NCBI GenBank assembly: GCA_002269645.1
Contig: NIVC01002404.1
Span: 1-64,000, forward strand
Direction: 5' to 3'
Source of the DNA: Macrostomum lignano
Taxonomy: Eukaryota
Length of the DNA stretch: 64,000 nucleotides
Position numbers and translations under genes: made by a program. Numbering within the stretch: the stretch's first letter is position 1; the number at the start of each line of letters is the position of its first letter. The notes under the pieces were generated by a model. That model was given only the letters and a program-made list of their open reading frames with translations. It did no database searches and had not been told where the DNA came from. This document shows positions 9,801 to 64,000 of this stretch, in pieces.

Positions 9801-10600
9801 GGTGAGATTTTGAGATTGATTATGAGATTTTGAGGCTGAAGCTGAGATTTTGAGATTGATGTTGAAATTTTAAGATTGATGGTGCGATTTTGAGTGATGG
9901 TGAGATTTTGATATTGCTATTGAGATTTTGAGATTGATGCTGAAATTTTAAAATTGATGATGAGATTTTGAGATTGATGCTGAGATTTTGAGATTGATAG
10001 TGACATTGAACCTGACGGTAAGATTTTGAACTTGGCTTCATGCTGTAAAGTAAAATTGCAGCTAAGCTAATTTAATGTCGCGCCCCTGTCAGGTACCTTT
10101 CTGTGCTCGTGATCGATCATAACATTGTGCGGCTTCACATCCCGATGCATGATGCCCATGCTGTGGCAATAATCTAATGCTTTCAACAGTTCGAACAGAT
10201 AGTACCGAATATCGTAGTCAACCAGAGTCTGGTAAAGCTGCTTGAAATCCGTGTTGTTAACGTGCTCAAATATCAGGGCTGGAGTGCGGGACACCGGGTC
10301 CTTCACGATGCCGTGCAAGCTGATGATATTTGTTCCGCCTTTCAAATTCTCCAATATTTTAATTTCCCGTTTAATCTTGCGCTTCTTAACCGGCTTCAGC
10401 ACTTTGATAACCACCTTCTCGTTGTTGGATATGTTAATACCCTCGAATACTTCCGAGTATTTGCCGCGGCCGAGTTTGCGCACAATCTGATAGTCGTCCT
10501 GGTTGCCCCACTCCACTACCAGGGCTTCGTAGTCCCAGTAGTCGCGCTCTCTAACGGCATTGGCGTCTGCGTAGACGCGAGCCTTGCTGGGCAGGGGCAT
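6815..10600 (-). CDS. CSNK2A1: Casein kinase II catalytic subunit alpha; exons 10600-10097, 8985-8875, 7777-7426, 6894-6815
   Basis: Hallmark motifs [69 protein letters not shown]. All junctions are GT-AG and phase-consistent. Confidence 0.97.
6900..7400. repeat. 25-bp minisatellite (GCAGGGTTGGAAGCGGTTCTGATTT) filling CK2a intron 3
   Basis: About 20 near-perfect tandem copies. Confidence 0.95.
7845..8720. repeat. 30-bp (and 29-bp variant) minisatellite (ATGAAGGGTTGGAACATGGAAACGGTTTTT) in CK2a intron 2
   Basis: Tandem copies; shares the AGGGTTGGAA...A(A/G)CGGTT core with the intron 3 repeat. Confidence 0.95.
9000..10010. repeat. Degenerate ~18-bp repeat (GAGATTTTGAGATTGAT..) in CK2a intron 1
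   Basis: Recurrent GATTTTGAGATTGA units across ~1 kb. Confidence 0.85.
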
Positions 10601-13483
10601 CTGGGCTTGTGGGGGGGGGGAGTCTCTTGGAGTTGGGCACTGGCTCTGTCTGCCTCAGATTGCTTCCGTTTAGCTTAGCCTGCGTCAGTTGCTAGGCATG
10701 CAGAGCTGCATCAATTGGTACAAATGAAAGCTAATCATATTTTTGCTATGACACATCAACCTGTATTTTTGGCACCCTGAGTACAAACCATTTTTCAAAG
10801 CTGGGATATTATTTCAATCAATTTCATTTCATTTCAATTAGGATTCATGGAAATTCAAGTCTTTTATTGGGTCAAAAATATGCTATTGATAAAAACTAGA
10901 CTATTATATATTGTCATGATGAACAATAGCACTTTTAAGACAACAAAAAGTATCAATCCAACTAAAAATAGATACTTTTGTAATTTTACTCATATGTTGA
11001 ATATTTGTATTTTTAAATGTTAATAACATAACCAACATTGATACTCTAAATAATACAATAAAATAATAGTTCATATACAATATAATCATGGATTAAATAT
11101 TTACAATAGAATGAATAATAATAAATGGAAGTAAAAACCAGCTACAAGCAGAATAAAACTTATTAGTATAATTGAGGCAGGCTTCTTTTCTTTAATAAGA
11201 TTACAAAGACAAAGCCAACAAAAAAACATTTCCTTTTTTGAGTATTTGTGGATACCAATGGCAAATAAAACAAGAACTTTATTTGTACCATGTTTCTCTG
11301 AACATAGAGCATTGTCAGGTAGAATAAAATATTTGTGAGACTAACAAGGTAAGAGAGATGCAATATATATATTATCAATTAGAGCATAGTGTACCAAAAA
11401 GCTAGAATTATACAATAGTAAAATTGCACAGTTGATAGAACTAAAAAATTCTAAGGTGCACACTGCTGCCTCTCCCTGCTAATTGAGCATTAAGAGAGGG
11501 TTTGCAATCTTTAATGTGCAATGCTTCCAATACAGAAAGTTTACTATAGTGCTCAATGCAATTGATAACACTTTAAAATTGTGAGCAAGGTTCACATTAA
11601 CATACTGGTTGCATATGAGTAGATGGTCTTGAATTGTGCTGGCCTTGGTACAGTGTTCCATTATCTAGTAAACAAGTGTTGTTCTGTCTTACCAATGTAA
11701 GGACAGCTTTGCATAAAGCTTTCTATACTTTGGTGCTACCAGCATTAAATTTCAAAAGAAATTAATTGAGATTTGTTGCAAGCATTTTGACTTCAATATC
11801 AGTTGTGTTTTTGGCACTTATAAGCTATGATCCTAGTATTCTCTAGACTAAAAGAGAAATCCTTAATAAAAACAAATATAAAGAATGGAATCAATGATAA
11901 ATACAACTTATTAGTAATTTTGTATTTTAAAAAGATAGGAAAAGAGCCTTATAGACTCAATATAGGGCAAATATGTTATAAAGTAGACTTATAACTTAAG
12001 TAGACTTAGGGCCTAGTAATATAGACTTAACTCAATTATTTAGGTATACTACCAAAACAATACAAGTAGTTAACAATATTTGCACCTATAACTATTATAT
12101 TAGTTGGACAACCTGCTCAAATAAAATGAGTTGTTCACTAGTTTTTATTAGTCAACAATTGTTTATAACTTAAACTAGTTAAACAGTATAAATTCTTAAT
12201 TTGAACTCTATATTTTTTAGATATGAATAAAAAATATTGAATTCTAGTATATTTTATATAAAAAATAAAAATCAATAAAACACTTTTAATTCTTTAAACA
12301 AAAGTTCAAAATATAGGGTGAAAATTAATATTAAGGCCTATAATTTTCAAATTTAATTATTAGCTAGGCTGACAATTTTAATCTTTAATAATTTATAATT
12401 AGAACTTTTATATCATAATTATAAAACATTCTTTAAGCCAAAAAATGCTAGAATTTTTTGCCTTTTTCACTTAGAATTTTGGCATAAACTTTCAACTTGG
12501 TATATAGAACTTTTGGCATAAGTTTAGTATATAGGACATTTATTGGTATACAAAAATAGCCATTTGGTATAGATAGGCCCTTAATCAATATATTAAATAG
12601 TATAGCTTGATTTTGAATATGGAAAACTCATAAAATAGATAAAAACAAGTGAACAACTTTATTAATGAAATAAAAGTAAGACAGTGTAAAGAAACAAGTT
12701 TTTAACTATAAAAAACCTTTGCTTTATTATAAAAACATTATAAAATAAGAGATATGAAAACACTATAAAAGGCTAACAAGTAAATAAGATAACTTGATCA
12801 CTAAATTGCTATTATATCAGAGGACAAAAAACAAATCCAGAAATTCATTCTAGACAAATCTAGAAACAAATCTAGTAATCTGTAATCTAGTAAATCTAGT
12901 AATCTGAAACAAATCTAGAAATTCAATCTAGAGCCTGTAATTTTTAATCAGCCAGAAAAAGTATCAAATTTAAAGTATAAAACTAATGTATGAATATGAA
13001 CTACAACTATAGTCTATAAGTTATAACTTAATTAGTATATGATGATTACATTACAACTACTGAACTGTGTTGGTTTATCAACTGACAAAAACAAGAACAA
13101 ATGGGAATACTCTATTGAATTTGGTAATTCGGTTAAAGATAACCTCTTAGTAGAACACAAACAAACAGGTCGCATAATAATTGGCAAAAATTATTGTGAC
13201 GAGGAAGTTAAATTTTCGTACTTTACTAAATAAATATTTTTGTGCTAAAATTTGGATAATCAGAAATGTTTTTTTGACCTATTATGCTACCTAAATATTG
13301 TTTTCGTGTGAATATATTGTGACGGTAAAAAAGACTTTCGTTTTTCTCGTTGTCACCAAGGCAACTTATTTTAAGATGTGTAAAATCGAGAAATATCGAA
13401 CATTATTACCAAAGGCAAGGCCTGCAAATCTATAGATGTGAGAAACATTCTGATTTTCACAAATTCTTTTTCGAAATTTATTA

Positions 13484-15511
13484 ATGGCAGACTCCGAGTC
13501 AACTAGCGAGTTCGAGAGCGAGACTGTGGACGATCCTATCCAGAATTTAAGTAACGAAAAGCTGTATGAGCTTCTGCAAAATATTCTGTAAGTACATGTA
13601 CGTCTTACATGTACATGAATTGTTTTCTTATATTCTTTTGATTGAAAAGTTATGTTTTATTATATTTTTTCAATTTAAATATCTAGCTGTATTGTAAAAT
13701 TGTTTCGGGTCATGTTCATAAATATAAGCTTGTCAATATCATTTATACTAGAAACAGAATGATCGTCAATTTGTCAAAACCATGAAAGCAAATATTTTTT
13801 TAATAATTCAAACGTGCTCAGCACAGAGAACGAGAAGCTTACGATGGAGAACGAGATGTTTGAGAAATTTCTTCGACGAGTGGAGCCGAACGCGCTTGGC
13901 GGAGGTGCAGGCTTGCTCGGATCCTCCACGGCGTCTCAGGCCTCGCAGCAGGAGGCGGCGCCAACCCGCGGCGTGCGCAAACGCAGCCGAAGCAAGGGCT
14001 CCGCCTCGGAGCGGACTCTGCGACTGACCGCTGAGCAGAAATGCGACATTGCGCAGCGCGAGATTGAGGAACTCCGAGAGGAGCTCAAGCGAATGGAAGG
14101 CGATTGCGAGAAGGTGAGCCATAGTGTAGCAAATTTGTTGTATCTTTACTTGTAAGATACGTACTAGCTTATCTGCTAGATGCATAGTCTATAGTTTATA
14201 TAGTACGTAACTGCCAGATACAGTTAATACCGGTTTATCCACTAAGCTGGGTTGTTTGGTGTATATTGATGTCAACGGCATCTGATCGACAATTGGTTTT
14301 GGCAACCTGACTAGGGACCAAAGGGCCAAAACGTCATTAAAGATTTTTAGTCGGATACTCAGTTGCCGTGTCTAATACGCTCGTACTATAGATTAATTTC
14401 AAATACTCCTTTTGTTTTCAGTATTATAGATCACGCTGACATTGTGATAGTCATAATAGTGACTTTGTGTATTTGAGTTTAGTTTTGTAACTCGTTTCGC
14501 TTGATCGATTAGTCCATACGTTCATTTCATACGTTCACTCGGTATATTTGAAGTATACTGCAGTACAAGCAGTCATTCCGTCTTGCCCACAACGCAGATC
14601 ATCGACAAGAAGTTGGCCATGATCGAGGAGACGCAGGTGCGGGCTATCGAGATTAAAAAGTTCGAGCACGAATTCCATCGCGACGTCATCGTTGGCGGAG
14701 TCAGCAAGCGAACTGGCAAGGTTGAATGCGAGAAATTCGAGCGCCATCATCGCGACCTGATCGGCAAGCGGCACGCGCTGATCAACAAGCTGGTGCTGAA
14801 GAACCAGGCCTTGAAGGTGTCCCTGAGGAAACTCAAATCACAACTCCGCCAGAAAGAGGAAATGGGCGACGTCCTGTCCAAGGTGGACTTCGATCAGCTG
14901 AAGATCGAGAACTCACAGTACATGGACAAAATAGACGAGAAGAATCAAGAGCTGCTCAAACTGAAGCTCATGGCTGGTCGTACGCTTCAAGTGCTGAATC
15001 AGCACAAGAAGAAGCTGGCCTTTCTTAACAAAGAACTGGACCGCATCAAAGCGGACATTCAGCAGCGCAACGACCTGCTTAGAAGGGTGGACGCTGAGGC
15101 GACCATCGCCGAGGAGGTGAGAAGCAGTTGGAAATGGCGCGCTTTCACCAAAACTAGCTTTGGCAGACTGGTAGCTTAACCTCTGGATCTGGGAGGGGTT
15201 AGCGGCAAAGTCTGAGGAGTTGAGGATCTAAGAGAGTGGAAACACCGCATCCCAGTCTAGGCGTAAGCAAACCAAAAAATACTGAAAACCCACAGGAGCG
15301 ACTCAAAGCCGAGGTGATCAACAGACGACTCCGCGAGCAGCTCTCGGACTACAAGGTGCCGGAGGTGCTGGAATACGTCAACTGCATGGCCGATCTGTAC
15401 GAGCTGCAGAAGAAGGAGCGCATCTGGGACCGGAAAGTAGACATCGCCAAGATGGCTGTGGACAGGCACCAGCGAATCTGGAAGCAGATCGCCAAGGACA
15501 GTCAGAAGTAG
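13484..15511 (+). CDS. CCDC113: Coiled-coil domain-containing protein 113 (CFAP263, ciliary); exons 13484-13587, 13822-14113, 14598-15116, 15296-15511
   Basis: Motifs ENEMFEKFL, LRLTAEQKCDIAQRE, KEEMGDVLSKVDFDQLKIEN, YKVPEVLEYV, WDRKVDIA match the CCDC113 family as I recall it. Junctions are GT-AG and phase-consistent. Confidence 0.88.
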
Positions 15512-16697: not shown

Positions 16698-18193
16698 TCA
16701 GCTCCGAACGCCGTTGCCAAGGCCCAAAGTCCGCTGCATTTCGGCCACCAATTTTTGGCACTCCTCGTCCGGGCGCTGGTGAAACGAGGCCACTGCACCG
16801 GTCATGGCAACTGTGTGCGGCCAGGACGAGCCGCAGAGCCACAGGCGGCCGTTCAGGCCAACGGTGGCTTCGCACTTGCCCAGCTGATCCAGCAGGCCCA
16901 GCAGTCGCCGCTTATCGGCCAGCAGGCGTCTGGCAAGCGACGGCGGCACAACAACCAGCGTCCCGGAGTCGCGGCCGACAACGCCCAGGGTGTCCGACCG
17001 GCCGTTCGAGTCCACGCAGACGAGCTCGGGCTCGAGGCCGGGGTCGCAGCGGGCCAGGCGGGCGTAGACCAAGTCGCCAAGTCGGACATCCGCCCGGTTG
17101 CGCTTGGTGGCGTTCTCGAAGCTGAGCAAGCTGAGGCTGGCCGGCTCAGAGCTGCCGATGTCCACCTGCGATGGGGTTGCGTGCAGCTTGTAGTATGACT
17201 CACTCACTGCTTGTCTGACTGTCTGATGTGACTCAGTCACTTTGTGTGCGTCTGTCCGCCTTATGTGCGGCCTGCCTAAGGTGACTGTCTCAGTGTCTGT
17301 CTCAGTGTCTGTCTCAGTGTCTGTCTCAGTGTCTGTCTCAGTGTCTGTCTCAGTGTCTGTCTCAGTGTCTGTCTCAGTGTCTGTCTCAGTGTCTGTCTCA
17401 GTGTCTGTCTCAATGTCTGTCTCAGTGTCTGTCTCAGTGTCTGTCTCAGTGTCTGTCTCAATGTCTGTCTCAGTGTCTGTCTCAGTGTCTGTCTCAATGT
17501 TTGTCTCAGTGTCTGTCTCAGTGTCTGTCTTAGTATCTGTCTCAGTGCCTGTCTCAGTGTCTGTCTCAATGTCTGTCTCAGTGCCTGTCTCAGTGTCTGT
17601 CTCAATGTTTGTCTCAGTGTCTGTCTTAGTATCTGTCTCAGTGCCTGTCTCAGTGTTTGCCTCAGTGCCTGTTTTAGTGACTGTCTCAGTGTCTGTCTCA
17701 GTCTCTGTCTCAGTGCCTGTCTCAGTGTTTGCCTCAGTGTCTGCTTTAATGAATTTCTTTAGTGCCTATCTGTCTGCCTAGCTGTCTTCAGGCCAGCAGC
17801 AGCAGCACCACCATCACTCACCAGCACTGCGTCGCCCATAGACCGGCGGGCCACCACACCGATGACGCAGTCGCCGCGCGCCGGCTGATATCGACCACCC
17901 GGGCAGTCCAGCCAGAAGCTGCGGCCGCGCTGTCGCAGGTAGCCTGACCGAGTGGCTCGAACTTCGAACTCAATAGAATCGTCGTTGCTTAATAGCGCCC
18001 GGAGACCCACGCCCAGCACGCACTTGGCATCGGAGCCGGCTGGCTCGCTGAAGGCCAAGTCGCCGGGCAGCAGCAGCCGTTCGACGTCGCCGTCGGCGGC
18101 ATCGTCGGCTTCTTCGCCCTCCTCCATGGACTCCTCGCCGAAGTCTTCATCGGGGTCGCGATTGATGAGCTTTTTAGCGTCGGCAACTTCCAT
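16698..18193 (-). CDS. EXOSC3: Exosome complex component RRP40; exons 18193-17822 and 17165-16698
   Basis: The spliced peptide RYQPARGDCVIGVV...GDAVL|VDIGSSEPASLSLLSFENATKRNRADVRLGDLVYARL...EPELVC...VGLNGRLW is the RRP40 S1/KH signature. Donor CTG|GTGAGT, acceptor CGCAG|GTG. Confidence 0.95.
17283..17745. repeat. 12-bp minisatellite (GTGTCTGTCTCA) in the EXOSC3 intron
   Basis: More than 35 tandem copies, degenerating towards 17745. Confidence 0.95.
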
Positions 18194-18216
18194 TGTGGAT
18201 TGCAGCGGGTGTGCAT

Positions 18217-18310
18217 TGATAGCCTGCACTGCTGTACATTGATAGCCTGCACTGCTGTACATTGATAGCCTGCACTGCTGTACATTGATAGCCTGCACTG
18301 CTGTACGTTG
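18217..18310. repeat. 23-bp tandem repeat x4 (GATAGCCTGCACTGCTGTACATT) just upstream of the EXOSC3 ATG
   Basis: Direct tandem copies. Confidence 0.9.
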
Positions 18311-18699
18311 ATACCACAAAGGATTTTAACGACTAGCCGAAACGCAATTTTATAATTAAGAGGACCATTTATTGCGATTAGGGCCAAGTGATTAATTGGC
18401 ATGAGTACGAGTACATCGTAGAGCTTGAAGTAAAAATGTGAAAGATAGGCACTTGAGGGAACTAAATATAGTGAAAGAAATCTGTAGCAAATCAGCTTAG
18501 GAAAAATCAATAAGTACAATATCAATATAAGTACTGCTCCTCGAAATTTAATTGGAAGGAATGATCAGATACAGTAAGTGTACAGTTAAAGGCGTTTATC
18601 TGTAAGCTGACTTAATGAATGAAAGTAACATTTATTAATACGAACTGGAAAGTTACAGGCCGAATATATTACCTTTACAAGAGCTCGTAAGCTATTTGC

Positions 18700-18795: not shown

Positions 18796-18849
18796 ACACA
18801 GAATGACTGCTCATACACAGAGCGATTGCTAGTGCATCATTACGCCATC

Positions 18850-20835
18850 TGATCAGTGCGGATCAGAGCACACCAGCCCTCCCTGATCAGTGTAGATCAG
18901 AGCACACCAGCCCTCCCTGATCAGTGCGGATCAGAGCACACCAGCCCTCCCTGATCAGTGTAGATCAGAGCACACCAGCCCTCCCTGATCAGTGTAGATC
19001 AGAGCACACCAGCCCTCCCTGATCAGTGCGGATCAGAGCACACCAGCCCTCCCTGATCAGTGTGGATCAGAGCACACCAGCCCTCCCTGATCAGTGTGGA
19101 TCAGAGCACACCAGCCCTCCCTGATCAGTGCGGATCAGAGCACACCAGCCCTCCCTGATCAGTGTAGATCAGAGCACACCAGCCCTCCCTGATCAGTGCG
19201 GATCAGAGCACACCAGCCCTCCCTGATCAGTGTAGATCAGAGCACACCAGCCCTCCCTGATCAGTGTAGATCAGAGCACACCAGCCCTCCCTGATCAGTG
19301 CGGATCAGAGCACACCAGCCCTCCCTGATCAGTGTAGATCAGAGCACACCAGCCCTCCCTGATCAGTGTAGATCAGAGCACACCAGCCCTCCCTGATCAG
19401 TGTAGATCAGAGCACACCAGCCCTCCCTGATCAGTGTGGATCAGAGCACACCAGCCCTCCCTGATCAGTGTGGATCAGAGCACACCAGCCCTCCCTGATC
19501 AGTGCGGATCAGAGCACACCAGCCCTCCCTGATCAGTGCGGATCAGAGCACACCAGCCCTCCCTGATCAGTGTAGATCAGAGCACACCAGCCCTCCCTGA
19601 TCAGTGTGGATCAGAGCACACCAGCCCTCCCTGATCAGTGCGGATCAGAGCACACCAGCCCTCCCTGATCAGTGCGGATCAGAGCACACCAGCCCTCCCT
19701 GATCAGTGTAGATCAGAGCACACCAGCCCTCCCTGATCAGTGTAGATCAGAGCACACCAGCCCTCCCTGATCAGTGTGGATCAGAGCACACCAGCCCTCC
19801 CTGATCAGTGTGGATCAGAGCACACCAGCCCTCCCTGATCAGTGTAGATCAGAGCACACCAGCCCTCCCTGATCAGTGTAGATCAGAGCACACCAGCCCT
19901 CCCTGATCAGTGTGGATCAGAGCACACCAGCCCTCCCTGATCAGTGCGGATCAGAGCACACCAGCCCTCCCTGATCAGTGTGGATCAGAGCACACCAGCC
20001 CTCCCTGATCAGTGCAGATCAGAGCACACCAGCCCTCCCTGATCAGTGTGGATCAGAGCACACCAGCCCTCCCTGATCAGTGTGGATCAGAGCACACCAG
20101 CCCTCCCTGATCAGGGGGGGTTTCACAAACTCGAAATTTCACAACGTCGAAAGCACCTTCTTTCACAAGGTCGAAATTTCACAAGGTCGAAATTTCATAA
20201 CATCGAAAACTCAAATAGCAGCCACTTTCACAAGGTCGAAACTTCACAAGGTCGAAATTTCACAACATCGAAAACTTTAGCAAAGGACTTCATAAGGTCG
20301 AAAATTCACAAGGTCGAAATTTCACAACATCGAAAACTTTAGCAAGAGACTTCATAAGGTCGAAATTTCATAAGGTCGAAATTTCACAACGTAGAAAACT
20401 ACTGTATGGTTCTTGATAGATAAAATTTTCGACTTTGTGAAATTTCGAGCTTATGAAGTTTCGACCTTGTGAAAGTGGCTGCACTTGAGTTTTCGATGTT
20501 ATGAAATTTCGACCTTATGAAATCTCTTGCTAGATTTTTCGATGTTGTGAAATTTCGACCTTGTGAAGTTTCTACCTTGTGAAAGTGGCTGCTATTTGAG
20601 TTTTCGATGTTGTGAAATTTCGACCTTATGAAATTTCGACCTTATGAAGTCTCTTGCTAAAGTTTTCGATGTTGTGAAATTTCGACCTTGTGAAGTTTCG
20701 ACCTTGTGAAATAATTTACTTTTCGACGTTGTGAAATTTCGACCTTGTGAAAGCACCCCCCTGATCAGTGTGGATCAGAGCACACCAGCCCTCCCTGATC
20801 AGTGTGGATCAGAGCACACCAGCCCTCCCTGATCA
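18850..20835. repeat. 34-bp minisatellite (GATCAGAGCACACCAGCCCTCCCTGATCAGTG(C/T)(A/G)), interrupted by an insertion at 20114-20761
   Basis: About 37 copies left of the insertion and ~2 right of it. Units vary almost only at two positions; there are no spacers. Confidence 0.95.
20114..20761. mobile_element. 648-bp foldback/MITE element whose long inverted arms are built of AGGTCGAAATTTCACA subrepeats
   Basis: Left end GGGGGGGTTTCACAAACTCGAAATTTCACAACGTCGAAAG; right end TTTCGACGTTGTGAAATTTCGACCTTGTGAAAGCACCCCCC. TGATCA flanks both sides (20108-20113, 20762-20767). Confidence 0.88.
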
Positions 20836-23325
20836 GTCAGCTGGAAGACGCGCAGCTCGTCGGCCGCGAACACCGGCAGACGGCCGGCCGCGGCTGCCCG
20901 ACCTTCGGCAAGCAGACGGGCGACGCCGGCATTGTCCAGCAGCGGACTGAAGTGATTGAGCACCAGAGCCTTGGCGCCCACTCGGCAGGCGAACTCAGCA
21001 GCCATAGCCGGAGTTGAATGGCCACTGGACACGCAGGAATCTCGGCGCGACTCGCCCACCGTGGCCTCGTGTACAAGACAGTCGACACCGCGGCAGAGCG
21101 ACTCGGCCAGCTGGGAGTCGCAGGTGTCGCCCAGAACAGCCAGGACTGGCCCGCCAATGTCGATGCGGTAGCCAACGCAGGGGATTCGATGGCGCAGCGG
21201 GGCGGCGCTGAGGCGGTCGCAAACTCGCCAGATGCCGCCGCCGTCGGGTGCAGCGCATTGGATCTGCGAGTTGGAGAGAAACAGATGCATTTTTTGAATG
21301 TGTAAGTTAACTGTATGCTACTTAAATAGCCACATGCTACTAGCGGGCAGTAATATATAAAGAGGAATAAGTAGACGCGAATAAACAGATCGTAAATAAA
21401 TAGAACGTGAATAAACAGACTGTGAATAGACAGACTGTAAAAAAACAGACCTTGAATAAACAGATCGTAAAAACAGACCGTGAATAAACAGACCGTAAAT
21501 AGACAGACCGTGAATAAACAGACCGTGAATGAACAGACCGTGAATGAATAGGTCACGAAAAGACAGACCGTGAACAGACAAAACGTGAATAAACAGACCG
21601 TGAATAGTCAGATCGTGAATAAACAGACCGTGAATAAACAGACCGTGAATAGACAGACCGTGAATAGACAGACCGTGAATAGACAGACCGTGAATAGTCA
21701 GATCGTGAATAAACAGACCGTGAATAAACAGACCGTGAATAAACAGATCGTGAATAAACAGACCGTGAATAAACAGACCGTGAATAGACAGACCGTGAAT
21801 AGTCAGATCGTGAATAAACAGACCGTGAATAAACAGACCGTGAATAGACAGACCGTGAATAGACAGACCGTGAATAGACAGACCGTGAATAAACAGAGCG
21901 TGAATAAACAGACCGTGAAAAGACAGATCGTGAATAAACAGACCGTGAATAAACAGACGGCGAATAAACAGACTGTGAGTAGACAGACTGAATAAACAGA
22001 TCGTAAAAACAGTCATGAATAAACAGACCGTGAATTAATAGGTCACGAAAAGACAGACCGTGAATAAACAGACCGTGAAAAAACAGACCGTGAATAGACA
22101 GACCGTGAAAAGACAGATCGTGAATAAACAGACCGTGAATAAACAGACCGTGAAAAGACAGATCGTGAATAAACAGACCGTGAATAAACAGACGGCGAAT
22201 AAACAGACTGTGAGTAGACAGACTGAATAAACAGATCGTAAAAACAGTCATGAATAAACAGACCGTGAATTAATAGGTCACGAAAAGACAGACCGTGAAC
22301 AGACAGACCGTGAATAAACAGACCGTGAATAAACAGACCGTGAAAAGACAGACCGTGAATAGACAGACCGTGAATAGACAGACCGTGAATAAACAGACCG
22401 TGAATAGACAGACCGTGAACAGACAGACCGTGAATAAACAGACCGTGAATAAACAGACCGTGAATAAACAGACCGTGAATAAACAGACCGTGAATAAACA
22501 GACCGTGAATAGACAGACCGTGAATAAACAGACCGTGAATAAACAGACCGTGAATAGACAGACCGTGGACAGACAGACCGTGAATAAACAGACCGTGAAT
22601 AAACAGACCGTGAATAGACAGACCGTGAATAGACAGACCGTGAAAAGACAGATCGTGAATAAACAGACCGTGAATAAACAGACCGTGAATAAACAGACCG
22701 TGAATAAACAGACCGTGAAAAACAGATCGTGAATAAACAGACCGTGAATAAACAGAAGATAAATAAACATACTAGTGTTCAGAATGAACAGCCAATGATG
22801 AGCCAATGGAAATGAACAAGACTGAAATGCACCAGGCCGCAGACTCACAGGCTCCGTCACATCCTCATAGGGCAGAGGCGGGAACTCGGGAGCCCGCAGG
22901 ATCAGATCTTCCAGCTCGGCCGAGCCCGGGCTACTAGGCGGCATCAGCGACGGCACGCCGGCCAGCTCCCGCAGGCGCAGCCGGACGCCGTTCCGGGCGT
23001 CAGTTCGCGTCAGAGCCAGACTGGTGCGCAGCAGCTGACGAATGCCGGACGGTCCAACCACCTCCAGCGTGCTGTCGGGAGCTGCCCGCCCCGCCACGGT
23101 GCTGAGCAGGCCGGGCAGGCCGTAGGTGTGATCGCCGTGCAGGTGAGTGACGGCAATGCGGCTGACCCGCCGCCTGTCCAGGCCAGATCTGACCAGCTGA
23201 ACCTGGGCGGACTCGCCGCAGTCAACCAGCCAGCAGTCGCCGTCGGCGTGGAACCTGACAGCGAGACAGGCCGTGTGCCGGTGAGGCGCCGGAAATGACG
23301 AACCGGTGCCGAGGAATACGAGATC
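20799..23325 (-). CDS. ELAC1: tRNase Z short form (ELAC1-type metallo-beta-lactamase); exons 23325-22849 and 21263-20799; start unresolved
   Basis: Motifs DLVFLGTGSSFP, WLVDCGE, THLHGDH, HRIPCVGY, VLGDT, VHEAT, GHST, NHFS. Donor CCT|GTGAGT and acceptor TCGCAG|ATC are in phase 0. Confidence 0.9.
21370..22760. repeat. 15-bp minisatellite (GAATAAACAGACCGT) filling the ELAC1 intron
   Basis: Many tandem copies over ~1.4 kb, with a duplicated block of variant units. Confidence 0.95.
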
Positions 23326-23939: not shown

Positions 23940-25700
23940 CTCAGTACTGAGTGCTGAGTGGGCGGCCATTTCCCAGAGACTCAGTGCAGACTGTGGAGAT
24001 TTCTAAGTGATTCAGTGCTGAGTGGGGAGATTTCCTAGAGACTCAGTGCTGAGTGGAAATATTTCCCAGTGACTCAGTGCTAAGTAAAATTTCCCAGTGA
24101 CTCAGCGCTGAATAGCAGATTTCCCAGTGCCTCAGTGCTGAATAGGATATTTCTCAGAGACTCAGTGCTGAGTGGAGAGATTTCCCAGTGACTCAGTGCT
24201 AAGTAAAATTTCCCAGTGACTCAGCGCTGAATAGCAGATTTCCCAGTGCCTCAGTGCTGAATAGGATATTTCTCAGAGACTCAGTGCTGAGTGGAGAGAT
24301 TTCCCAGTGACTCAGTGCTGAATAGCAGATTTCCCAGTGACTCAGTGCTAAATAGGATATTTCTCAGAGACTCAGTGCTGAGTGGAGAGATTTCCCAGTG
24401 ACTCATGGAGAGATTTCCCAGTGACTCAGTGCTGAATAGCAGATTTCCAGTGCCTCAGTGCTGAGAGGGGAGATTTCCCAGTGACTCATGGAGAGATTTC
24501 CCAGTGACTCAGTGCTGAGAGGGGAGATTTCCCAGTGACTCAGTGCTGAGAGGGGAGATTTCCCAGTGACTCAGTGCTGAGAGGGGAGATTTCCCAGTGA
24601 CTCATGGAGAGATTTCACAGTGACTCAGTGCTGAGAAGGGAGATTTCCCAGTGACTCAGTGCTGAATAGGAGATTTCCCAGTGACTCAGTGCTGAGTGGA
24701 GAGATTTCCCAGAGACTCATGGAGAGATTTCCCAGTGACTCAGTGCTGAATAGCAGATTTCCAGTGCCTCAGTGCTGAGAGGGGAGATTTCCCAGTGACT
24801 CATGGAGAGATTTCCCAGTGACCCAGTGCTGAGAGGGGAGATTTCCCAGTGACTCAGTGCTGAATAGCAGATTTCCAGTGCCTCAGTGCTGAGAGGGGAG
24901 ATTTCCCAGTGACTCATGGAGAGATTTCCCAGTGACTCAGTGCTGAGAGGGGAGATTTCCCAGTGACTTAGTGCTGAGAGGGGAGATTTCCCAGTGACTC
25001 AGTGCTGAGAGGGGAGATTTCCCAGTGACTCAGTGCTGAGAGGGGAGATTTCCCAGTGACTCAGTGCTGAGAGGGGAGATTTCCCAGTGACTCAGTGCTG
25101 AGAGGGGAGATTTCCCAGTGACTCATGGAGAGATTTCACAGTGACTCAGTGCTGAGAAGGGAGATTTCCCAGTGACTCAGCGCTGAATAGCAGATTTCCC
25201 AGTGCCTCAGTGCTGAATAGGATATTTCTCAGAGACTCAGTGCTGAGTGGAGAGATATCCCAGTGACTCAGTGCTGAGAAGGGAGATTTCCCAGTGACTC
25301 AGTGCTGAATAGCAGATTTCCAGTGCCTCAGTGCTGAGAGGGGAGATTTCCCAGTGACTCATGGAGAGATTTCCCAGTGACTCAGTGCTGAGAGGGGAGA
25401 TTTCCCAGTGACTCATGGAGAGATTTCTTAGTGACTCAGTGCTGAGAGGGGAGATTTCCCAGTGACTCAGTGCTGAGAGGGGAGATTTCCCAGTGACTCA
25501 TGGAGAGATTTCCCAGTGACTCAATGCTGAGAGGGGAGATTTCCCAGTGACTCATGGAGAGATTTCCCAGTGACTCAGTGCTGAGTGGAGAGATTTCCCA
25601 GAGACTCATGGAGAGATTTCACAGGGACTCAGTGCTGAGAGGGGAGATTTCCCAGTGACTCATGGAGAGATTTCCCAGTGACTCAGTGCTGAGTGGAAGG
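23940..25700. repeat. Composite ~20/31-bp satellite (GAGATTTCCCAGTGACTCAGTGCTGAGAGGG and GAGATTTCCCAGTGACTCATGGA variants) between DCAF13 and ELAC1
   Basis: Tandem variant units over ~1.75 kb. Confidence 0.92.
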
Positions 25701-25771
25701 TTTTCCAGAGACCTAATTTGAAAAAATGCCACTAATCCCTTAGAATCTGTCATTGAGTTTGCATCATTGAT

Positions 25772-27908
25772 TTACTCGTCGACCCCTCGAACGTGTCGAT
25801 CTCTCTCAGGCACGAATGGCTCCTTGTCCTCGCCGCGGTGCTCGCGCCTGTTCACCTCCTTCCGGCGCTGCTTGCCGCGTATCGCTTTCATTTCTAACTG
25901 GGCCTGGTACAGCCGCTTGGGCAGGTGCCTGTGCTGTACAATCCGCCTCACCTGCGGATGGTGCGCGTATTTCTGTTTCAAAGCCTCGGCTGTATTGACT
26001 GCCGCCCGTTCGCGCGGCGTCGACGCGCCTAACTTCTCGGAGGCGCGCGCTTTCCATAGGCGCAAATTGAAATCTGCGCTAGCCGTGACAATGAACCGAG
26101 CGTCTAGGCTGTAGCGAGCGGCGAACACTCGGTACATTCGCTTGGTGTGATAGACGTCGCGGGACTGGCTCCGGCCGGACTCCCACAGGCGCACGGTGCA
26201 ATCGTAGCTAGCCGAGACCAGCTCTCGGCCAGTTGGCGCAAAATCGACGTCCATGGCTGCGTTGGTGTGGCCGCGGTAAACGCATGCCGGCGAAGCCAGC
26301 CGGCGAGCGTCCCAAGAGTACAGATTGTAGTCGTCTGAAGCTGTTGCCAGCACGAACGGCTCCTGGGTATTGGAATCGGCTTTGAGAGTTGCAGAATGTC
26401 ACTGTGGAGTGTGACTATCTGATGTGACCGTGGAATGTGACTGTCTATCTGATGTGACCGTGGAATGTGACTGTCTATCTGATGTGACCGTGGAATGTGA
26501 CTGTCTGTTTGATGTGACCTTAAAATACAATTACCTGTTAAATGTGACCCTGAGTGTGACCATATAATGTGAGCGTGGTGTGTGACTGTCTGTCTGTTGT
26601 GACCATGGAATGTGACAGCGGTGTAACTGGTTCCCAAGCACTACGCAGCAACCTTAGCAACCAACCCAACCCACCTGGGGGTTCCAGCACAGCGCATTCT
26701 GCCGGAACTCGCAACGGATTCGCCTCAACGGCTCCCTCTGCCGGGTGTCAATCAGCAACAGCGCGTTGTCCTTAGTAATGGCCGCCAGCAGGTGCCACTC
26801 GGTAGGATTGAATCGAGCCTGCAGCACGGAGTCCGAGCCCCATTTCCATTGGCCAACGGGATCAGAGCGCCTGCTATCGTATAAGTACACAGCGTCACCG
26901 GACAGTGCGAACAGGTCCTTGCTGACGTGGTGGTCCAGATTCAGGGGAGCGAAGTCCAGATGCCGCTGGCTGACTGGCCGGCTGAATTCGGTGAGGTCGT
27001 CGCCGACGCGCCAAGCCTTCAAGGTGCGGTCGGTGTCGCAGCAGGAATAGAACAGGTCCTGCTCGGGGTGCCAGCACAGGCCCTGCGAGTTGGTTGGTGG
27101 TTTAAGGAAGTAAGTGTTTGTTATGGACAGCTTAATAGCCTTTAGACACGGTTAAAACAGATAGCTGTTAGATACGGATAGCTGTTAGATACGGATAGCT
27201 GCTAGACACACGGAGAGCAGTTAGACAAATGGATAGCTGTTACACATGGATAGCTGTTAGACACGGATGGTTGTTAGACACACGGATAGCTGTTAGACAC
27301 ACGGATAGCTGTTAGACACACGGATAGCTGTTAGATACACGGATAGCTGTTAGACACACGGACAGCTGTTAGATACACGGATAGCTGTTAGAGAAAGATA
27401 GCTGTTAGACACAGATAGCTGTTAGAGAAAGATGGCTGTTAGAGAAAGATAGCTTTTAGACACGGATAGCTGTTAGACACGGATAGCTGTTAGACACGGA
27501 TAGCTGTTAGACACAGTAGTCGGTTAGGTGCTACAAAGAGGTAACTGTAGACTATAGCAGAGCACCCACCTGCACGCATCCGGAGTGCGCATCCAGCTGC
27601 AGCACGCGGCTCCGCCTGGGAATATTCCAGAAGGCCACCCGCCCGTCAACGCAGCCGCTGAGGCACAGACTGAGCGCTCGCGGATGCATGCACACGCGGC
27701 TAAGCTGGTCGCCCTGATCGCCGAAACAGCCGAGAAACGGTTTGGCAAACACCCTCTCCAGCTTGGCCGCGTTCAGTGCCCGAACATACTCAGTCTCGGC
27801 TGACATCGGGTGCAGCTCTGGCGCCGGGTTACGCGCCAATTTGTGAATATCGTCGGCTGTTTCGCGCAGATAATCCTGCGGATTGCGCAATAGCAGCTTC
27901 ACCTTCAT
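25772..27908 (-). CDS. DCAF13: DDB1- and CUL4-associated factor 13 (Sof1/WDSOF1, SSU processome); exons 27908-27570, 27082-26675, 26362-25772
   Basis: MKVKLLLRNPQDYLRET, EYVRALNAAKLERVFAKPF, WNPQ|EPFVLATASDDYNLY, MDVDFAPTGRELVS, YHTKRMYRVF, LRLWKARASEKLG, RHLPK. Junctions are GT-AG, phase 0. Confidence 0.96.
26405..26530. repeat. 30-bp tandem repeat (CTATCTGATGTGACCGTGGAATGTGACTGT) in DCAF13 intron 2
   Basis: Three to four copies. Confidence 0.85.
27150..27505. repeat. 16-18-bp minisatellite (ACACGGATAGCTGTTAG) in DCAF13 intron 1
   Basis: About 20 variant copies. Confidence 0.9.
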
Positions 27909-34219: not shown

Positions 34220-34298
34220 AGAGAAACGGCGCGAACTCTTAAAACTAGATTCAGAAGAATTCCGAAGAATAATTTGAAAAGTTTTTCATAGAGAGAAG

Positions 34299-35303
34299 AT
34301 GAATCAGAATCAGGCTAATGATGCCATCGCCATGCTGGCAGAAGAATTGCGAAACCGACTAGAGATAGGGCCGATGAGACACGTTAAGATTCAGAAATTC
34401 ACACCTACGCAAGACATTCGGATCTGGCTAACAGCCTTCGATCAGCGCTGTGAAGTAGAAGGGATAGATGAGGAACATAGGAAGCAGGAATTGCTAGCTA
34501 ATCTGGACCTGTCCACTGCATTCGCAGCGGTACAGCGCCTAAATCTGCCCGAGGATCTTGAATACGAAGAGTTCAAAGAGCGACTGATTGAGCGATTCGG
34601 AAGAATCGGTAGTTCCGCAGAATTCAGAGAGGAGTTTCGTGGAAGAATGCAAGGCAGAAATGAGCCTGTAGAGACTTTCGCAGACTGTTTGATCGAGCTG
34701 GCATCGCGTGCATTTCCGAATATGACGGTTGAGCAAAGGGAAGAAGAAATTGTTGAGCAATTCATCAAGGGAATCAGAATTCCGTCAGAGACCCGTGAGA
34801 AGCTAATCTTTGCGCAGCCAGGCAATTTACAAGAGGCTAGAAGAATGCTAAGAAGGATGGAGGCTGCGTGGAACATGTCTCACAAGAATGTCAACATGAG
34901 AATGGCCAAAGGCGAAGGCGAGAGTGAGCAGAAGGCAGATCAGGAAAAGCTTGAGGACATCATCAAGAAGCAGAGAGCAGAGTTAGAGCAACAGAAGAAG
35001 GCGATTGAGGAGCTGATGGAAGAGAAGAGAGCTAGCCGTCAGCAGTATCATCCGCAGAATCAATATCAAACGTACGCTCAGGTCGCTGGACCGCCGCAGC
35101 AGCCGAGATATCGGCCGCAGCAGCAGCAGCAGCAGCAGCCAGTATGGCGCGGTCAGCCTCAGTTCAACAGGCAGCCACAGCAACAGCAGCAGCCTCGAGC
35201 CTGCTACAATTGCGGGAAGCTTGGCCACATGGCGAGGAATTGCCAGAGCGCTAGGCCAAACGGTCAGCGAGTGATGGACTACCAGAAGCAGCAGGGAAAC
35301 TGA
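34299..35303 (+). CDS. gag: Gag (copy 1) with CCHC zinc knuckle
   Basis: 334 aa; retrotransposon capsid-like region, Q-rich linker, CYNCGKLGHMARNC. Confidence 0.93.
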   Translation: MNQNQANDAIAMLAEELRNRLEIGPMRHVKIQKFTPTQDIRIWLTAFDQRCEVEGIDEEHRKQELLANLDLSTAFAAVQRLNLPEDLEYEEFKERLIERFGRIGSSAEFREEFRGRMQGRNEPVETFADCLIELASRAFPNMTVEQREEEIVEQFIKGIRIPSETREKLIFAQPGNLQEARRMLRRMEAAWNMSHKNVNMRMAKGEGESEQKADQEKLEDIIKKQRAELEQQKKAIEELMEEKRASRQQYHPQNQYQTYAQVAGPPQQPRYRPQQQQQQQPVWRGQPQFNRQPQQQQQPRACYNCGKLGHMARNCQSARPNGQRVMDYQKQQGN

Positions 35304-35340
35304 GTAGCGAGGGCCGCTTTGCGAGGCCACGTCCCTCTAG
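35294..35340 (+). promoter_or_regulatory. Predicted -1 ribosomal frameshift signal (G GGA AAC plus downstream stem-loop); also at 43191-43237
   Basis: The heptamer immediately precedes the gag TGA. The pol frame is -1 and open with no stop from here to the ATG at 35486. A GAGGG...CCCTC hairpin follows. Confidence 0.8.
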
Positions 35341-35485
35341 CAACAATTATCGCGAATTTCAGGCCTCTGAATTTGTAAATAATGCGTATCGAAGTAATGC
35401 CAGACAGTATAGTAACAGCAGAACGCATGCCGAATTCAATAAATTTCACAGAAAACCAAATAAAAATTTTGCACCTCGTGTACAT

Positions 35486-38400
35486 ATGCCGCTTGCACCT
35501 AGTCATGCGTCTGCTAGCCACAGTAGGCCGAATAATAAAGTACAAAGTACAGTAATTCCGAATGAGCATTCGAAGAGAGAATTCGAAGAAGATACGGAGA
35601 GAAAAGGACGAGAAGCAGTCGTCAATGGAATGCTAAGAAACCGAAAGGTCTACTTCTTGCTAGACACAGGAGCTGGACATAATTTCCTAAGCAAGAGTAC
35701 TTGGAAAAAGATGTTCAGAAGTGATGAAATTGAGTTGACTACTCGAAGAGTGACTACGTTTGACGGATCAAGTGTGCGAATTGAAGGAGAAGTCAGAACG
35801 AAAATACGATTCGGAGAGATAGAGATTGAGACAGAGTTCCTGCTGTGCAATCACGAGTGTGACGACATACTCGGGATGGAGTTCTTCATGAACTTCTGCG
35901 ACAGCATCAGCCTTTCCAGAGGAATGCTTGTATTAAAAGAAGGAACCTGCATCCCAATTCAGTTTACAAAATTACCCGTACGGGTTTGCCGAATCTACAG
36001 CCATAACAGCGTGACTATACCAGCGAATAGCGCTCTTCGAATTCCAATTAGAATGACTAAAGGATCAGAAGCCAACTATGGAACGCCAATGGTCATTGAC
36101 ACCATTGGAGGCCAAGTGACTACGAAGAGAAATTCCTTAGAGATGATTCCTACTCTAGTGACCATGAACGATGGAACAGGAGTAGTGGAAATAATCAATC
36201 GACAGAATGACGATATCAGACTGACAAGATCTACGCTGATTGGAGTGGCCAAACCCTTGAAGCCAGGAGGCCTGGCCTACTCTATTAACAGCAAAGGTCA
36301 AGCCAGTTCAGATGATACAATTAGGACAGTGAAGAGTGAAGAGAGTGAGTACAGCTGGATAAACGAGATCGATTTAGGAGAAGAGCTAACATCAGAACAG
36401 AAAGGACTAGTGATCGATTTGCTAAAGAAGAACAAGGAAGCATTTTCGCAGACCAACCAAGACATGGGTCTCACCCATCTTGTGACTCATGAAATATCTC
36501 TAAAAGATACCACACCGGTCAGGATTCCAACACGCAGAATTCCACCACATCTGCAAAAGCAAGTAGATGAGCAACTTGACGACATGCTTGCTAAGAACCT
36601 GATCCGACCGTGCTATAGTACTTATTCGACGCCGCTAGTGATAGTTCCTAAGAAGGATGGATCCATAAGAATCGTCAGTGACTTCAGGGTCCTGAATTCG
36701 AGAGTGAACTATTACCCATATCCATTACCGAACATACAAGAGACTTTCGCTCAGTTATCTGGAAGCAAGTACTTCAGTAGTCTAGATTTAAACTCTGGAT
36801 ACTGGCAGGTACCTATCAAAGAGGAGCACAAATTTATGACAGCCTTTTCCACCCTTACCAGAGGCCAGTTCGAATATCAGGTCATGGCACAGGGCTTGTC
36901 TAACGCTCCTGGTACATTCCAGAGACTCATGAATTTGGTGCTGATGGGAATACAGCACAAATTCGCAATGTCGTACATAGATGATATTGTGACATACTCA
37001 GAGAAATTCGAAGATCATCTCGGTCATCTGCAAGAAGTATTTCAAAGACTAATCTCAGCAGGACTAAAATTAAGACCAAAAAAGTGCAACTTGTTTCAGA
37101 AAGAGCTAAAGTACTTAGGGCATATCGTAGGAAGAGAAGGGATTAGAACAGACCCAGCTAAGATCGAAGCGATACAGTCATGGCCTACGCCGAAAGAGGT
37201 CAAAGAACTGCGAAGCTTCTTGGGGTTGTGTAACTACTACTGCAGATTTGTAAAGAATTACGCAGAGGCAGCGCATCCGCTATTTCAATTAACTAAGAAA
37301 GGTATTCAAAACTTTAGGGAAAAGTGGACCAAGAAACATGACGAGGCTTTCCAGCAGTTGAAGCAGAGAATGACATCGACCGAAGTACTCGCGTACCCAG
37401 AATTCTCAGAGAACGAGAATGTTCGAATGGTATTAGACACCGACGCAAGCGAAGACCGAATTGGTGCTTGCCTGGGTCAAATACAATCGGACGGGGTTGA
37501 AAGACCCATTGCTTACTTCAGCAGAGCAATGAAAGAGTCTGAGAAAAGATATCCGATTACCAGAAAAGAGCTATTAGCGCTAGTAGATGGCATGAAACAC
37601 TTCCGATTTTACCTAATTGGCAAAAGGTTTCTGGCCCGCACAGACCACAAGGCAATTCTATGGTTACTGCGCCAGACCGAAGCCCAAGGAATTCTCGGAA
37701 GATGGATTGAAAGACTGAGTGAGTTTCAATACGATATTGAGCACCGCAGTGGAGCCAAACATTCCAACGCAGATGGATTGTCACGGCGACCCTCGGAACC
37801 ACCAGTTGAACAGAAAGATGCTAAGATCAAAGAGAATGAGGCCGAAATTCCTAAGATGACAATAGAAACCAGCGCTGTGAAACAAGTCGTGACTAACAGC
37901 GTGAAAGATCAGAGTTGCCAGACCGACTTCACAGAAGAGTATGAATCAGATTCCGAAGACGAATTCGCAGATGATGAATACGAAGATGCCAGTGATCAGT
38001 TCGAAGATAATGATGACATCTATGAAGATGCAAGAGACTATTTCGAAGAGGAAGAGACAGTGTGCAGAAAGCTTCTGACAGATTACCTCTCGGTTCCATT
38101 GAAGAAAGAGCAGCTGACTTCAGCGCAGCATGCTGATCCTTCTATAAGAACCTTGATGGACTGGAAGCAGAAGAAAGTGCGTGAGCCGAAGTTGCCAGAA
38201 AATGCATCCGGAGAGTTGAAGAAGATGGTTAAGTTCTACGAGCAGATGAAAATCGAAGATGAAATGCTGACAGTCAGTGAAGACGGTAAACGGAAAGTAG
38301 TATTGCCAGAAAGGATTGAGAAAGATGTATTCAAAGAGCTGCATGACAGTCCGCTAGCAGGCCACCTAGGTCGGGACAAGACGCTACAGCGAGTCCGAGA

Positions 38401-42094: not shown

Positions 42095-42195
42095 GCTGGT
42101 GGCAGCGATAAGGATTAGAGAAACGGCGCGAACTCTTAAAACTAGATTCAGAAGAATTCCGAAGAATAATTTGAAAAGTTTTTCATAGAGAGAAG

Positions 42196-43200
42196 ATGAA
42201 TCAGAATCAGGCTAATGATGCCATCGCCATGCTGGCAGAAGAATTGCGAAACCGACTAGAGATAGGGCCGATGAGACACGTTAAGATTCAGAAATTCACA
42301 CCTACGCAAGACATTCGGATCTGGCTAACAGCCTTCGATCAGCGCTGTGAAGTAGAAGGGATAGATGAGGAACATAGGAAGCAGGAATTGCTAGCTAATC
42401 TGGACCTGTCCACTGCATTCGCAGCGGTACAGCGCCTAAATCTGCCCGAGGATCTTGAATACGAAGAGTTCAAAGAGCGACTGATTGAGCGATTCGGAAG
42501 AATCGGTAGTTCCGCAGAATTCAGAGAGGAGTTTCGTGGAAGAATGCAAGGCAGAAATGAGCCTGTAGAGACTTTCGCAGACTGTTTGATCGAGCTGGCA
42601 TCGCGTGCATTTCCGAATATGACGGTTGAGCAAAGGGAAGAAGAAATTGTTGAGCAATTCATCAAGGGAATCAGAATTCCGTCAGAGACCCGTGAGAAGC
42701 TAATCTTTGCGCAGCCAGGCAATTTACAAGAGGCTAGAAGAATGCTAAGAAGGATGGAGGCTGCGTGGAACATGTCTCACAAGAATGTCAACATGAGAAT
42801 GGCCAAAGGCGAAGGCGAGAGTGAGCAGAAGGCAGATCAGGAAAAGCTTGAGGACATCATCAAGAAGCAGAGAGCAGAGTTAGAGCAACAGAAGAAGGCG
42901 ATTGAGGAGCTGATGGAAGAGAAGAGAGCTAGCCGTCAGCAGTATCATCCGCAGAATCAATATCAAACGTACGCTCAGGTCGCTGGACCGCCGCAGCAGC
43001 CGAGATATCGGCCGCAGCAGCAGCAGCAGCAGCAGCCAGTATGGCGCGGTCAGCCTCAGTTCAACAGGCAGCCACAGCAACAGCAGCAGCCTCGAGCCTG
43101 CTACAATTGCGGGAAGCTTGGCCACATGGCGAGGAATTGCCAGAGCGCTAGGCCAAACGGTCAGCGAGTGATGGACTACCAGAAGCAGCAGGGAAACTGA
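42196..43200 (+). CDS. gag: Gag (copy 2)
   Basis: Protein identical to copy 1. Confidence 0.93.
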   Translation: MNQNQANDAIAMLAEELRNRLEIGPMRHVKIQKFTPTQDIRIWLTAFDQRCEVEGIDEEHRKQELLANLDLSTAFAAVQRLNLPEDLEYEEFKERLIERFGRIGSSAEFREEFRGRMQGRNEPVETFADCLIELASRAFPNMTVEQREEEIVEQFIKGIRIPSETREKLIFAQPGNLQEARRMLRRMEAAWNMSHKNVNMRMAKGEGESEQKADQEKLEDIIKKQRAELEQQKKAIEELMEEKRASRQQYHPQNQYQTYAQVAGPPQQPRYRPQQQQQQQPVWRGQPQFNRQPQQQQQPRACYNCGKLGHMARNCQSARPNGQRVMDYQKQQGN

Positions 43201-63918: not shown

Positions 63919-64000
63919 CTGTGGAGATCAGGAAGGTGTACGTTAGGCATGCACTTTTACTCGAGGCTAAGGTTAGTGTGCGATGAAGCATGAATGAGAT

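Follow-up and report, generated by a model that had tools for sequence, protein, structure and literature searches.

An armless ELAC1-derived tRNase Z-like protein in the flatworm Macrostomum lignano

The first 64,000 nucleotides of contig NIVC01002404.1 from the Macrostomum lignano assembly GCA_002269645.1 (forward-strand positions 1 to 64,000, hereafter the window) contain a two-exon gene of the ELAC1/RNase Z type on the minus strand, whose 313-aa metallo-beta-lactamase product has no flexible arm (exosite) and is referred to here as the armless protein. Exon 1 (23325-22849, reading GATCTCGTA from its start) encodes residues 1-159, which comprise the N-terminal half of the metallo-beta-lactamase core and the ELAC1-type insert separating motif II from motif III; its product pairs with residues 2-111 of human ELAC1, and its donor site is canonical (GAGCCT/GTGAGT at 22849/22848, with the slash in such strings marking the splice junction). 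The single intron (minus strand, 22848-21264; 1585 bp, GTGAGT...CAG) interrupts the protein in phase 0 at TEP/IQC, and nearly all of it consists of the 15-bp minisatellite GAATAAACAGACCGT, present in about 92 copies at 21379-22756. Exon 2 (minus strand, 21263-20802) follows a canonical acceptor (ctcgcag/ATC) and carries residues 160-313 and the stop codon in one uninterrupted open reading frame (ORF) that includes motifs III and IV, the HEAT and HST motifs, motif V and the junction left by the arm deletion. The protein begins with DLVFLGTGSS and finishes with RVFQLTDQGGLVCSDPH.

The catalytic motifs can be followed along the minus strand. Motif II, HLHGDH (23145-23128, residues 61-66), supplies zinc ligands and the general base and occupies columns that are invariant in both homologue alignments. 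Motif III, HRIPCVGY (21191-21168), provides the zinc ligand His184 and leads directly into the deletion junction RIDIGGPV (21167-21144), where an IGGP turn stands in place of the flexible arm of about 50 residues; it is followed by motif IV, LGDT (21134-21123), with the bridging ligand Asp205. The whole segment HRIPCVGYRI-DIGGP-VLAVLGDT, which corresponds to residues 184-206, is located within exon 2. Two proton-transfer motifs, HEAT (21071-21060, H224-E225-A-T) and HST (21020-21012, H241-S-T, with Ser239 two residues N-terminal to its His), precede motif V, HFSPLL (20954-20937), in which His263 and Ser265 are retained and Leu-Leu replaces the Arg-Tyr pair of HFSxRY. All catalytic residues (D35, H61, H63, D65, H66, H184, D205, H224, E225, H241, and H263) are thus present.

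Sequence and predicted structure both relate this protein to ELAC1. It matches the Pfam families Lactamase_B (PF00753) and Lactamase_B_2 (PF12706), and a metallo-beta-lactamase fold with an HxHxDH motif II is found in its sequence and predicted fold. The best NCBIfam model is RNase_Z (TIGR02651, 8e-50); however, it scores 169.6 bits, below the curated cut-off of 292.95, in two separate stretches that flank the absent arm. The closest solved structure by sequence is human ELAC1 (3zwf, 9e-40), which is also the top Foldseek match to the predicted fold (E 1e-23, TM-score 0.82-0.84 normalized by target length), followed by RNase Z. Outside the arm, the protein departs from a consensus of at least 80% at eight positions (F34V, T40A, F58A, L110A, V177L, R267L, Y268L, and D295E). 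Two of these substitutions, R267L and Y268L, affect the Arg-Tyr pair of HFSxRY, which is conserved in 95 and 87% of 114 homologues, respectively, and corresponds in the alignment to R728/Y729 of ELAC2, whereas the position of ELAC2 K700 is occupied by Ser239. In ELAC2, K700 stabilizes the discriminator base and the acceptor end (PMC11996679, PMC11602120), R728 is part of the surface that binds the acceptor stem and the 3'-trailer, and a K700A/R728A mutant cleaves less (PMC11602120). As judged from these alignments, the armless protein lacks both the elbow-binding arm and the acceptor-end contacts, while its predicted chemistry is kept. A comparison of isoelectric point and charge between the armless and arm-bearing forms gave no informative contrast.

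The flexible arm between motifs III and IV is described as the module by which tRNase Z, including its short form, differs from the other metallo-beta-lactamase proteins (PMC3161902, PMC3433465), and the armless protein does not have it. The motif III His and the motif IV Asp are separated by 21 residues, as opposed to nearly always 71 (range approximately 68-90), from bacteria to vertebrates, among about 270 homologues inspected (120 listed homologues and 150 representatives from the exhaustive HMMER scan). In a phmmer comparison with E. coli RNase Z (2cbn), the exon 2 product pairs with E. coli residues 134-152 (query up to residue 196) and resumes at 202-290, so that residues 153-201 are without a counterpart. 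The experimentally defined exosite of E. coli RNase Z comprises residues 153-203, according to PMC12663964, which cites Schilling 2005; thus, by alignment, the natural deletion is almost exactly the laboratory exosite deletion, with the same block removed to within two residues. The AlphaFold2 model of the armless protein (103-sequence alignment; pLDDT 94, pTM 0.93) shows strands 188-194 and 199-203 at the junction, linked by the four-residue I-G-G-P turn into a tight hairpin with a local pLDDT of 95-97. A tblastn search of the whole 64-kb window with six arm peptides revealed no arm-coding remnant (best E 0.34, on the wrong strand), and we therefore rejected a missed or optional arm exon; in the positive control, the arm query matched the locus of an arm-bearing M. 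lignano paralogue at 4e-31. An earlier, preliminary description of this locus, made from the sequence alone, is borne out on these points: it had proposed an ELAC1-type enzyme (3zwf is the top match by sequence and fold, and the sister of the protein is the normal M. lignano ELAC1 described next) with intact HLHGDH, GDT, HEAT, HST, and HFS motifs and HFSPLL instead of the usual HFSQRY, an arm deleted inside one continuous exon, and a junction whose position within that exon leaves no room for a missed exon as an explanation.

A second, arm-bearing ELAC1, for which the same description had advised a search, is encoded in the M. lignano genome (P0003, Mlig001820g2). This 388-aa paralogue has a spacing of about 75 residues between motifs III and IV, contains all motifs including HFSQRY, has Lys at the K700 position, and shows the consensus residue at all eight positions at which the armless protein deviates. 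Its arm (residues 207-264) is predicted to be well folded (pLDDT 91-96), and it is without the GP motif that most tRNase Z arms conserve. With similarity to vertebrate ELAC1 at approximately 1e-65 and 40% identity, its sequence identifies it as an ordinary ELAC1 orthologue. The armless and arm-bearing M. lignano proteins, which differ by 47%, are sisters in a neighbor-joining tree with 100% bootstrap support, thus the duplication is lineage-specific, and the armless protein descends from animal ELAC1 through its sister. Unique changes are 1.5-2.4 times more numerous on the armless branch in Tajima relative-rate tests, a significant excess with most animal outgroups (p 0.003-0.03). Two introns divide the paralogue, one following residue 113 or so and the other at VIRPEQ/ATAAPP, where the arm ends on its C-terminal side. 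Since neither of them is found in the armless gene, one idea is that the latter originated as a retrocopy.

Two side observations concern the integrity of the arm in other ELAC1 gene models. At the paralogue locus (L001, 6001-8401), the alternative deposited models P0125 and P0129 frameshift right after VIRPEQ, at the intron 2 junction, and end early. The predicted isoform X3 of Latimeria chalumnae ELAC1 (P0029) has a spacing of 43 rather than 71 residues with the arm partly deleted, which suggests that alternative splicing can shorten the ELAC1 arm in a vertebrate.

The armless protein from the window is 100% identical to M. lignano PAA58170.1 (Mlig031651g3), and further copies were identified at two other loci of GCA_002269645.1 (Mlig017331g1 and Mlig031295g2) and as two gene models of an older assembly; each of these differs by one or two replacements and has the identical deletion junction. 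All three loci share the gene order WD40/Sof1, armless gene, RRP40, and CCDC113, and their ORFs are intact and of equal length, while the intron measures 1585, 1165, and 1405 bp and the coding sequences differ at 11-13 positions. The occurrence of an identical junction in three loci and the older assembly excludes the assembly collapse that the preliminary description had named as a possible refutation. Among the three coding sequences, we counted 14 synonymous and 3 non-synonymous single-base changes, with pairwise dN/dS of 0.04-0.14 at dS of 0.03-0.04; under neutrality, three or fewer replacements in 17 changes have a binomial probability of 4.7e-6. All three replacements are located within the variable insert (residues 122-140) and none in the core. 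From this synonymous excess, we conclude that the armless gene is under strong purifying selection and is constrained as a protein; the same dN/dS range argues against a decaying pseudogene, another refutation foreseen for this locus. Together with the relative-rate tests, the substitution pattern indicates a somewhat accelerated evolution of the armless copy following the duplication and strong constraint at present.

The armless gene has no ATG at its own start. Its first codon, GAT (Asp1), directly follows an AG acceptor (23327-23326, minus strand) that we propose to be a trans-splice site for the spliced leader (SL); the context ...attcaag/GATCTC is found in all three armless copies, and the paralogue has ...ctgcag/GACCTG. 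An in-frame TGA (23334-23332) closes the ELAC frame at a distance of three codons upstream of Asp1, and the sole nearby ATG (23335-23333) is out of frame. If the outron were retained, this ATG would open a 37-codon frame that overlaps exon 1, in line with the idea of trans-splicing as a means of removing upstream AUGs. The deposited models of the armless copies and the paralogue all start at the Asp codon and are flagged as "partial." The M. lignano SL, CGGTCTCTTACTGCGAAGACTCAATTTATTGCATG, ends in ATG; approximately 30% of genes are trans-spliced, and the preferred acceptor is [T/C]TNCAG (PMC8629364). With the SL joined at position 23325, the protein would begin M-DLVFLGTG, in keeping with the MDxxFLGTG start of other ELAC1 proteins. 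That the terminal AUG of the flatworm SL can serve as the initiator is established, reportedly by Cheng et al. in 2006. Thus, translation of the armless gene probably starts at the SL-terminal AUG, and the locus would be a clear example of a start codon provided by a spliced leader.

The surroundings of the gene are rich in repeats. Its C-terminal tail, TDQGGLVCSDPH with the stop codon (20840-20802, minus strand), coincides with the first unit of the 34-bp satellite CTGATCAGTGTGGATCAGAGCACACCAGCCCTCC, which occupies 18849-20114 and 20759-20837 (37 and 2.3 copies) and whose first unit provides the last 11 codons and the stop of the gene. The tail is identical in all three armless copies. Because the paralogue tail, THEGVKFVADHG, matches it in length and shows a similar T..G....D pattern, the 3' end of the armless gene may itself have given rise to the satellite. 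In the window copy only, the satellite is interrupted by a foldback element of about 640 bp (20115-20758), which is built from two arrays of 16-bp TTTCACAAGGTCGAAA units in inverted orientation, has G-run/C-run termini and is bordered by CTGATCAG on both sides; at the other two loci the satellite is unbroken. The upstream neighbor is a Sof1/DCAF13 gene involved in RNA processing (exons at 25775-27151, minus strand), and a 31-bp minisatellite (23968-25712) lies between it and the armless gene. Downstream, on the same strand, RRP40 is located at approximately 17762-18325, assigned by synteny with the other two loci (L002/L003), as the window ORF itself has no Pfam match. The spacers between Sof1/DCAF13, the armless gene, and RRP40 are shorter than about 1 kb once tandem repeats are subtracted, and the three genes would count as an operon under the criterion published for M. 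lignano if all three were trans-spliced. Other genes in the window, at 10070-10654 (minus strand), 14505-15176 (plus strand), and 62263-63956 (minus strand), are represented by a casein kinase 2 alpha-like protein-kinase exon, a CCDC113/CCDC96 coiled-coil exon, and several WD40 exons. The window also contains two identical tandem LTR retrotransposons of the Ty3/gypsy type (34278-39802 and 42175-47699), each with two apparently intact ORFs, one gag-like and containing a zinc knuckle (341 aa), the other for protease/reverse transcriptase/RNase H/integrase (1516 aa).

Proteins that combine a complete set of motifs with the absence of the arm have been described in other eukaryotes. Four Basidiomycota species have two short-form tRNase Z proteins (tRNase ZS) each, one of which is armless (PMC2942849), and many tRNase Z-like proteins (TLPs) from basal plants and green algae have no arm and retain the other motifs (PMC3161902). 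By these descriptions, the flatworm protein resembles the TLPs in being arm-free with its motifs kept, and it resembles the fungal proteins also in sharing its genome with an arm-bearing short form. However, the flatworm case has an independent origin inside animal ELAC1, and here purifying selection and the additional loss of acceptor contacts are shown. Armless tRNase ZS-like proteins are therefore a descriptive grouping rather than a clade, and the flatworm protein answers to this description. Among the matches of our scan, there are further independent armless or near-armless cases, namely the transcribed protein P0193 of the red alga Rhodosorus marinus (spacing 21) and the metagenomic protein P0272 (spacing 30). 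Three other candidates in which the query matched in a single stretch were rejected, P0172 and P0191 on account of a spacing of 71 and P0192 on account of the usual arm-end PG motif before motif IV. A survey covering 81 metazoans does not mention any short form without the arm (PMC3433465), and we found no published report of an armless ELAC1 in any animal, of ELAC1 together with Macrostomum, or of these gene identifiers. The novelty implied by the preliminary description was therefore overstated in that such forms were already known from Basidiomycota and from green plants and algae, and it stands in that no animal report was found; this looks like the first animal example, independently derived, of an enzyme kind previously described in fungi and plants.

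Other RNase Z-like proteins can be compared at the level of structure and function. Human ELAC1 (3zwf) and bacterial RNase Z (2cbn, 1y44, 4gcw) share the fold, motifs I-V, HEAT, HST, and the PxxxR loop with the armless protein, whereas the latter is distinguished from them by the missing exosite, Leu-Leu in place of Arg-Tyr, and an RNase_Z score under the cut-off. The catalytic half of ELAC2 is naturally armless and catalytically complete, with a spacing of 22 residues between motifs III and IV, and aligns with the flatworm protein across the junction without a gap; however, it is joined in ELAC2 to an N-terminal half that bears the arm and is catalytically dead, and it keeps K700 and R728/Y729, whereas the flatworm protein is a separate polypeptide consisting of one 313-aa domain with Ser and Leu residues at these positions. 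The closest match to the deletion itself is the engineered E. coli ZiPD/RNase Z from which residues 153-203 were removed, a laboratory construct with which the natural deletion agrees to within two residues. In work attributed to Schilling in 2005, this exosite deletion is said to abolish tRNA processing while bpNPP hydrolysis is kept. RNase Z-like folds without an exosite are also present in the phage Apyc1 cyclic-nucleotide phosphodiesterases (7t28, 7u2r) and in the archaeal NZ proteins, the latter being inactive on tRNA precursors (PMC3296008). Apyc1, however, is a distant relative (E 3.6e-5 by sequence, TM-score 0.50 normalized by query length) that ranks far below RNase Z, and the NCBIfam model for cyclic-nucleotide-degrading phosphodiesterases (NF041851, cyc_nuc_deg_phdiest) gives 48.7 bits relative to a cut-off of 400. 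By sequence, the flatworm protein is thus a recent ELAC1 derivative and not a member of the NZ or Apyc1 families.

We consider it somewhat probable, on balance, that the armless protein is a neofunctionalized, working zinc phosphodiesterase that no longer relies on recognizing the tRNA elbow and has turned to a different substrate. ELAC1, the short-form tRNase Z, was duplicated in the Macrostomum lineage, and one copy underwent a clean in-frame excision of the whole flexible arm, the module that grips the tRNA elbow, with the gap sealed by the four-residue Gly-Gly-Pro turn. The di-zinc phosphodiesterase center (motifs I-V, HEAT, and HST) is intact, and three further residues whose ELAC2 equivalents hold the tRNA acceptor end and 3'-trailer (the HFSxRY Arg and Tyr, and the Lys that precedes HST), all of them kept by the sister gene, were lost. 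With elbow docking lost, the enzyme would have a target different from canonical pre-tRNA, for example small or unstructured phosphodiesters, by analogy with the engineered exosite-deleted E. coli RNase Z with its residual non-tRNA activity. Catalytic competence and a changed choice of substrate, as put forward in the preliminary description, are inferences. Several points weigh against this interpretation. The estimate of constraint is based on 17 substitutions among highly similar copies, and with some outgroups the relative-rate excess fails to reach significance. Searches of a 5.8-billion-protein collection, in which all close relatives listed are from M. lignano, and by HMMER of a representative library of 1.84 billion proteins yielded no orthologue from other Macrostomum species or other flatworms. 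Transcript support is confined to the deposited gene models, all of which begin exactly at the AG/ junction, and the acceptor of the armless gene is AAG rather than the preferred [T/C]TNCAG. In addition, exosite deletion in E. coli RNase Z lowered deAMPylation, the one non-tRNA activity tested (PMC12663964).

The main rival is a putative heterodimer in which the armless protein and its arm-bearing paralogue form a one-armed dimer that imitates tRNase ZL/ELAC2, which we consider possible and yet rather unlikely. Both paralogues are present in one genome, and the helices around motif II, which we take to form the interface of the RNase Z dimer, show good conservation between the two. The spacing of 21 residues in the armless protein is close to that in the catalytic half of ELAC2 (22, from H644 to D666), where binding of the tRNA falls to the arm-bearing half and cleavage to the armless one (PMC12663964), and the same one-armed dimer has been proposed for Basidiomycota with one armed and one armless tRNase ZS (PMC2942849). 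However, the armless subunit would have to do the cutting without the HFSxRY Arg/Tyr pair and the K700 equivalent that the armless catalytic half of ELAC2 keeps and needs. The catalytic motifs of the paralogue show no complementary decay either, so its homodimer should already be the better tRNase Z. A broader and likewise doubtful idea is that we observe an independent animal replay of the step presumed to have produced tRNase ZL, namely duplication of a tRNase ZS and loss of the arm with formation of a 21-22-residue hairpin as in the catalytic half of ELAC2, after which the protein would have become either the cutting subunit of a one-armed heterodimer or a non-tRNA phosphodiesterase acting on cyclic or linear oligonucleotides or on AMPylated proteins.

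The remaining alternatives are progressively less likely, in the order given here. The armless protein might act alone on tRNA ends, for example in removing 2',3'-cyclic phosphates from CCA-less tRNAs whose short 3' end reaches the active site; this activity on ANKZF1-cleaved tRNAs is reported for ELAC1/tRNase ZS in PMC11602120 and bioRxiv 10.1101/2021.08.05.455008, and the same-strand flanking genes, Sof1/DCAF13 upstream and RRP40 downstream, are involved in RNA processing. We regard such a role as improbable, given that the equivalents of R728/Y729 and K700 were lost together with the arm, which argues mildly against any tRNA-directed function, that the arm-bearing paralogue can do this job, and that no sequence feature specific to cyclic-phosphate substrates is present; the 2',3'-cyclic-phosphate tRNA repair suggested in the preliminary description is thus without support here. 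A non-functional or decaying duplicate, either a transcribed pseudogene or a dominant-negative remnant, would account for the missing in-frame genomic ATG, the stop codon inside a satellite repeat, the loss of the highly conserved Arg and Tyr, and the faster-evolving lineage. Yet the clearly normal paralogue likewise has no ATG, a lack for which an SL-borne AUG accounts, and the tail has the length of the paralogue's; with three intact ORFs of equal length, the synonymous excess (14 vs. 3) and a core free of replacements, and all catalytic residues kept, decay seems quite improbable. An assembly or annotation artefact, through a collapsed region or a missed exon, might be suspected at a locus rich in tandem repeats, and M. 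lignano is described as a hidden polyploid with difficult assemblies (PMC10468722). However, the junction lies within a single exon in unique, non-repetitive coding sequence, it is the same in three separately assembled loci that differ elsewhere and in an independent older assembly, and no arm-like sequence exists elsewhere in the window, which makes an artefact extremely improbable.

For annotation, these results mean that the name "ribonuclease Z," assigned by homology alone, is not warranted for the armless gene; since the arm serves as the module by which tRNase Z is defined, "ELAC1-derived tRNase Z-like protein" is the better name. An armless ELAC1 copy that is maintained under constraint beside a normal copy represents a natural separation-of-function allele, and the heterodimer idea developed for fungi becomes testable in an animal. 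RNA interference and transgenesis are available for M. lignano. Either outcome of the tRNase ZL-like replay, if true, would offer a natural, selectable system for the function of the RNase Z core without its exosite. The armless protein could reveal the activity of the RNase Z core uncoupled from tRNA-elbow recognition, which bears on the phosphodiesterase, cyclic-phosphate removal, and deAMPylation activities of this family.

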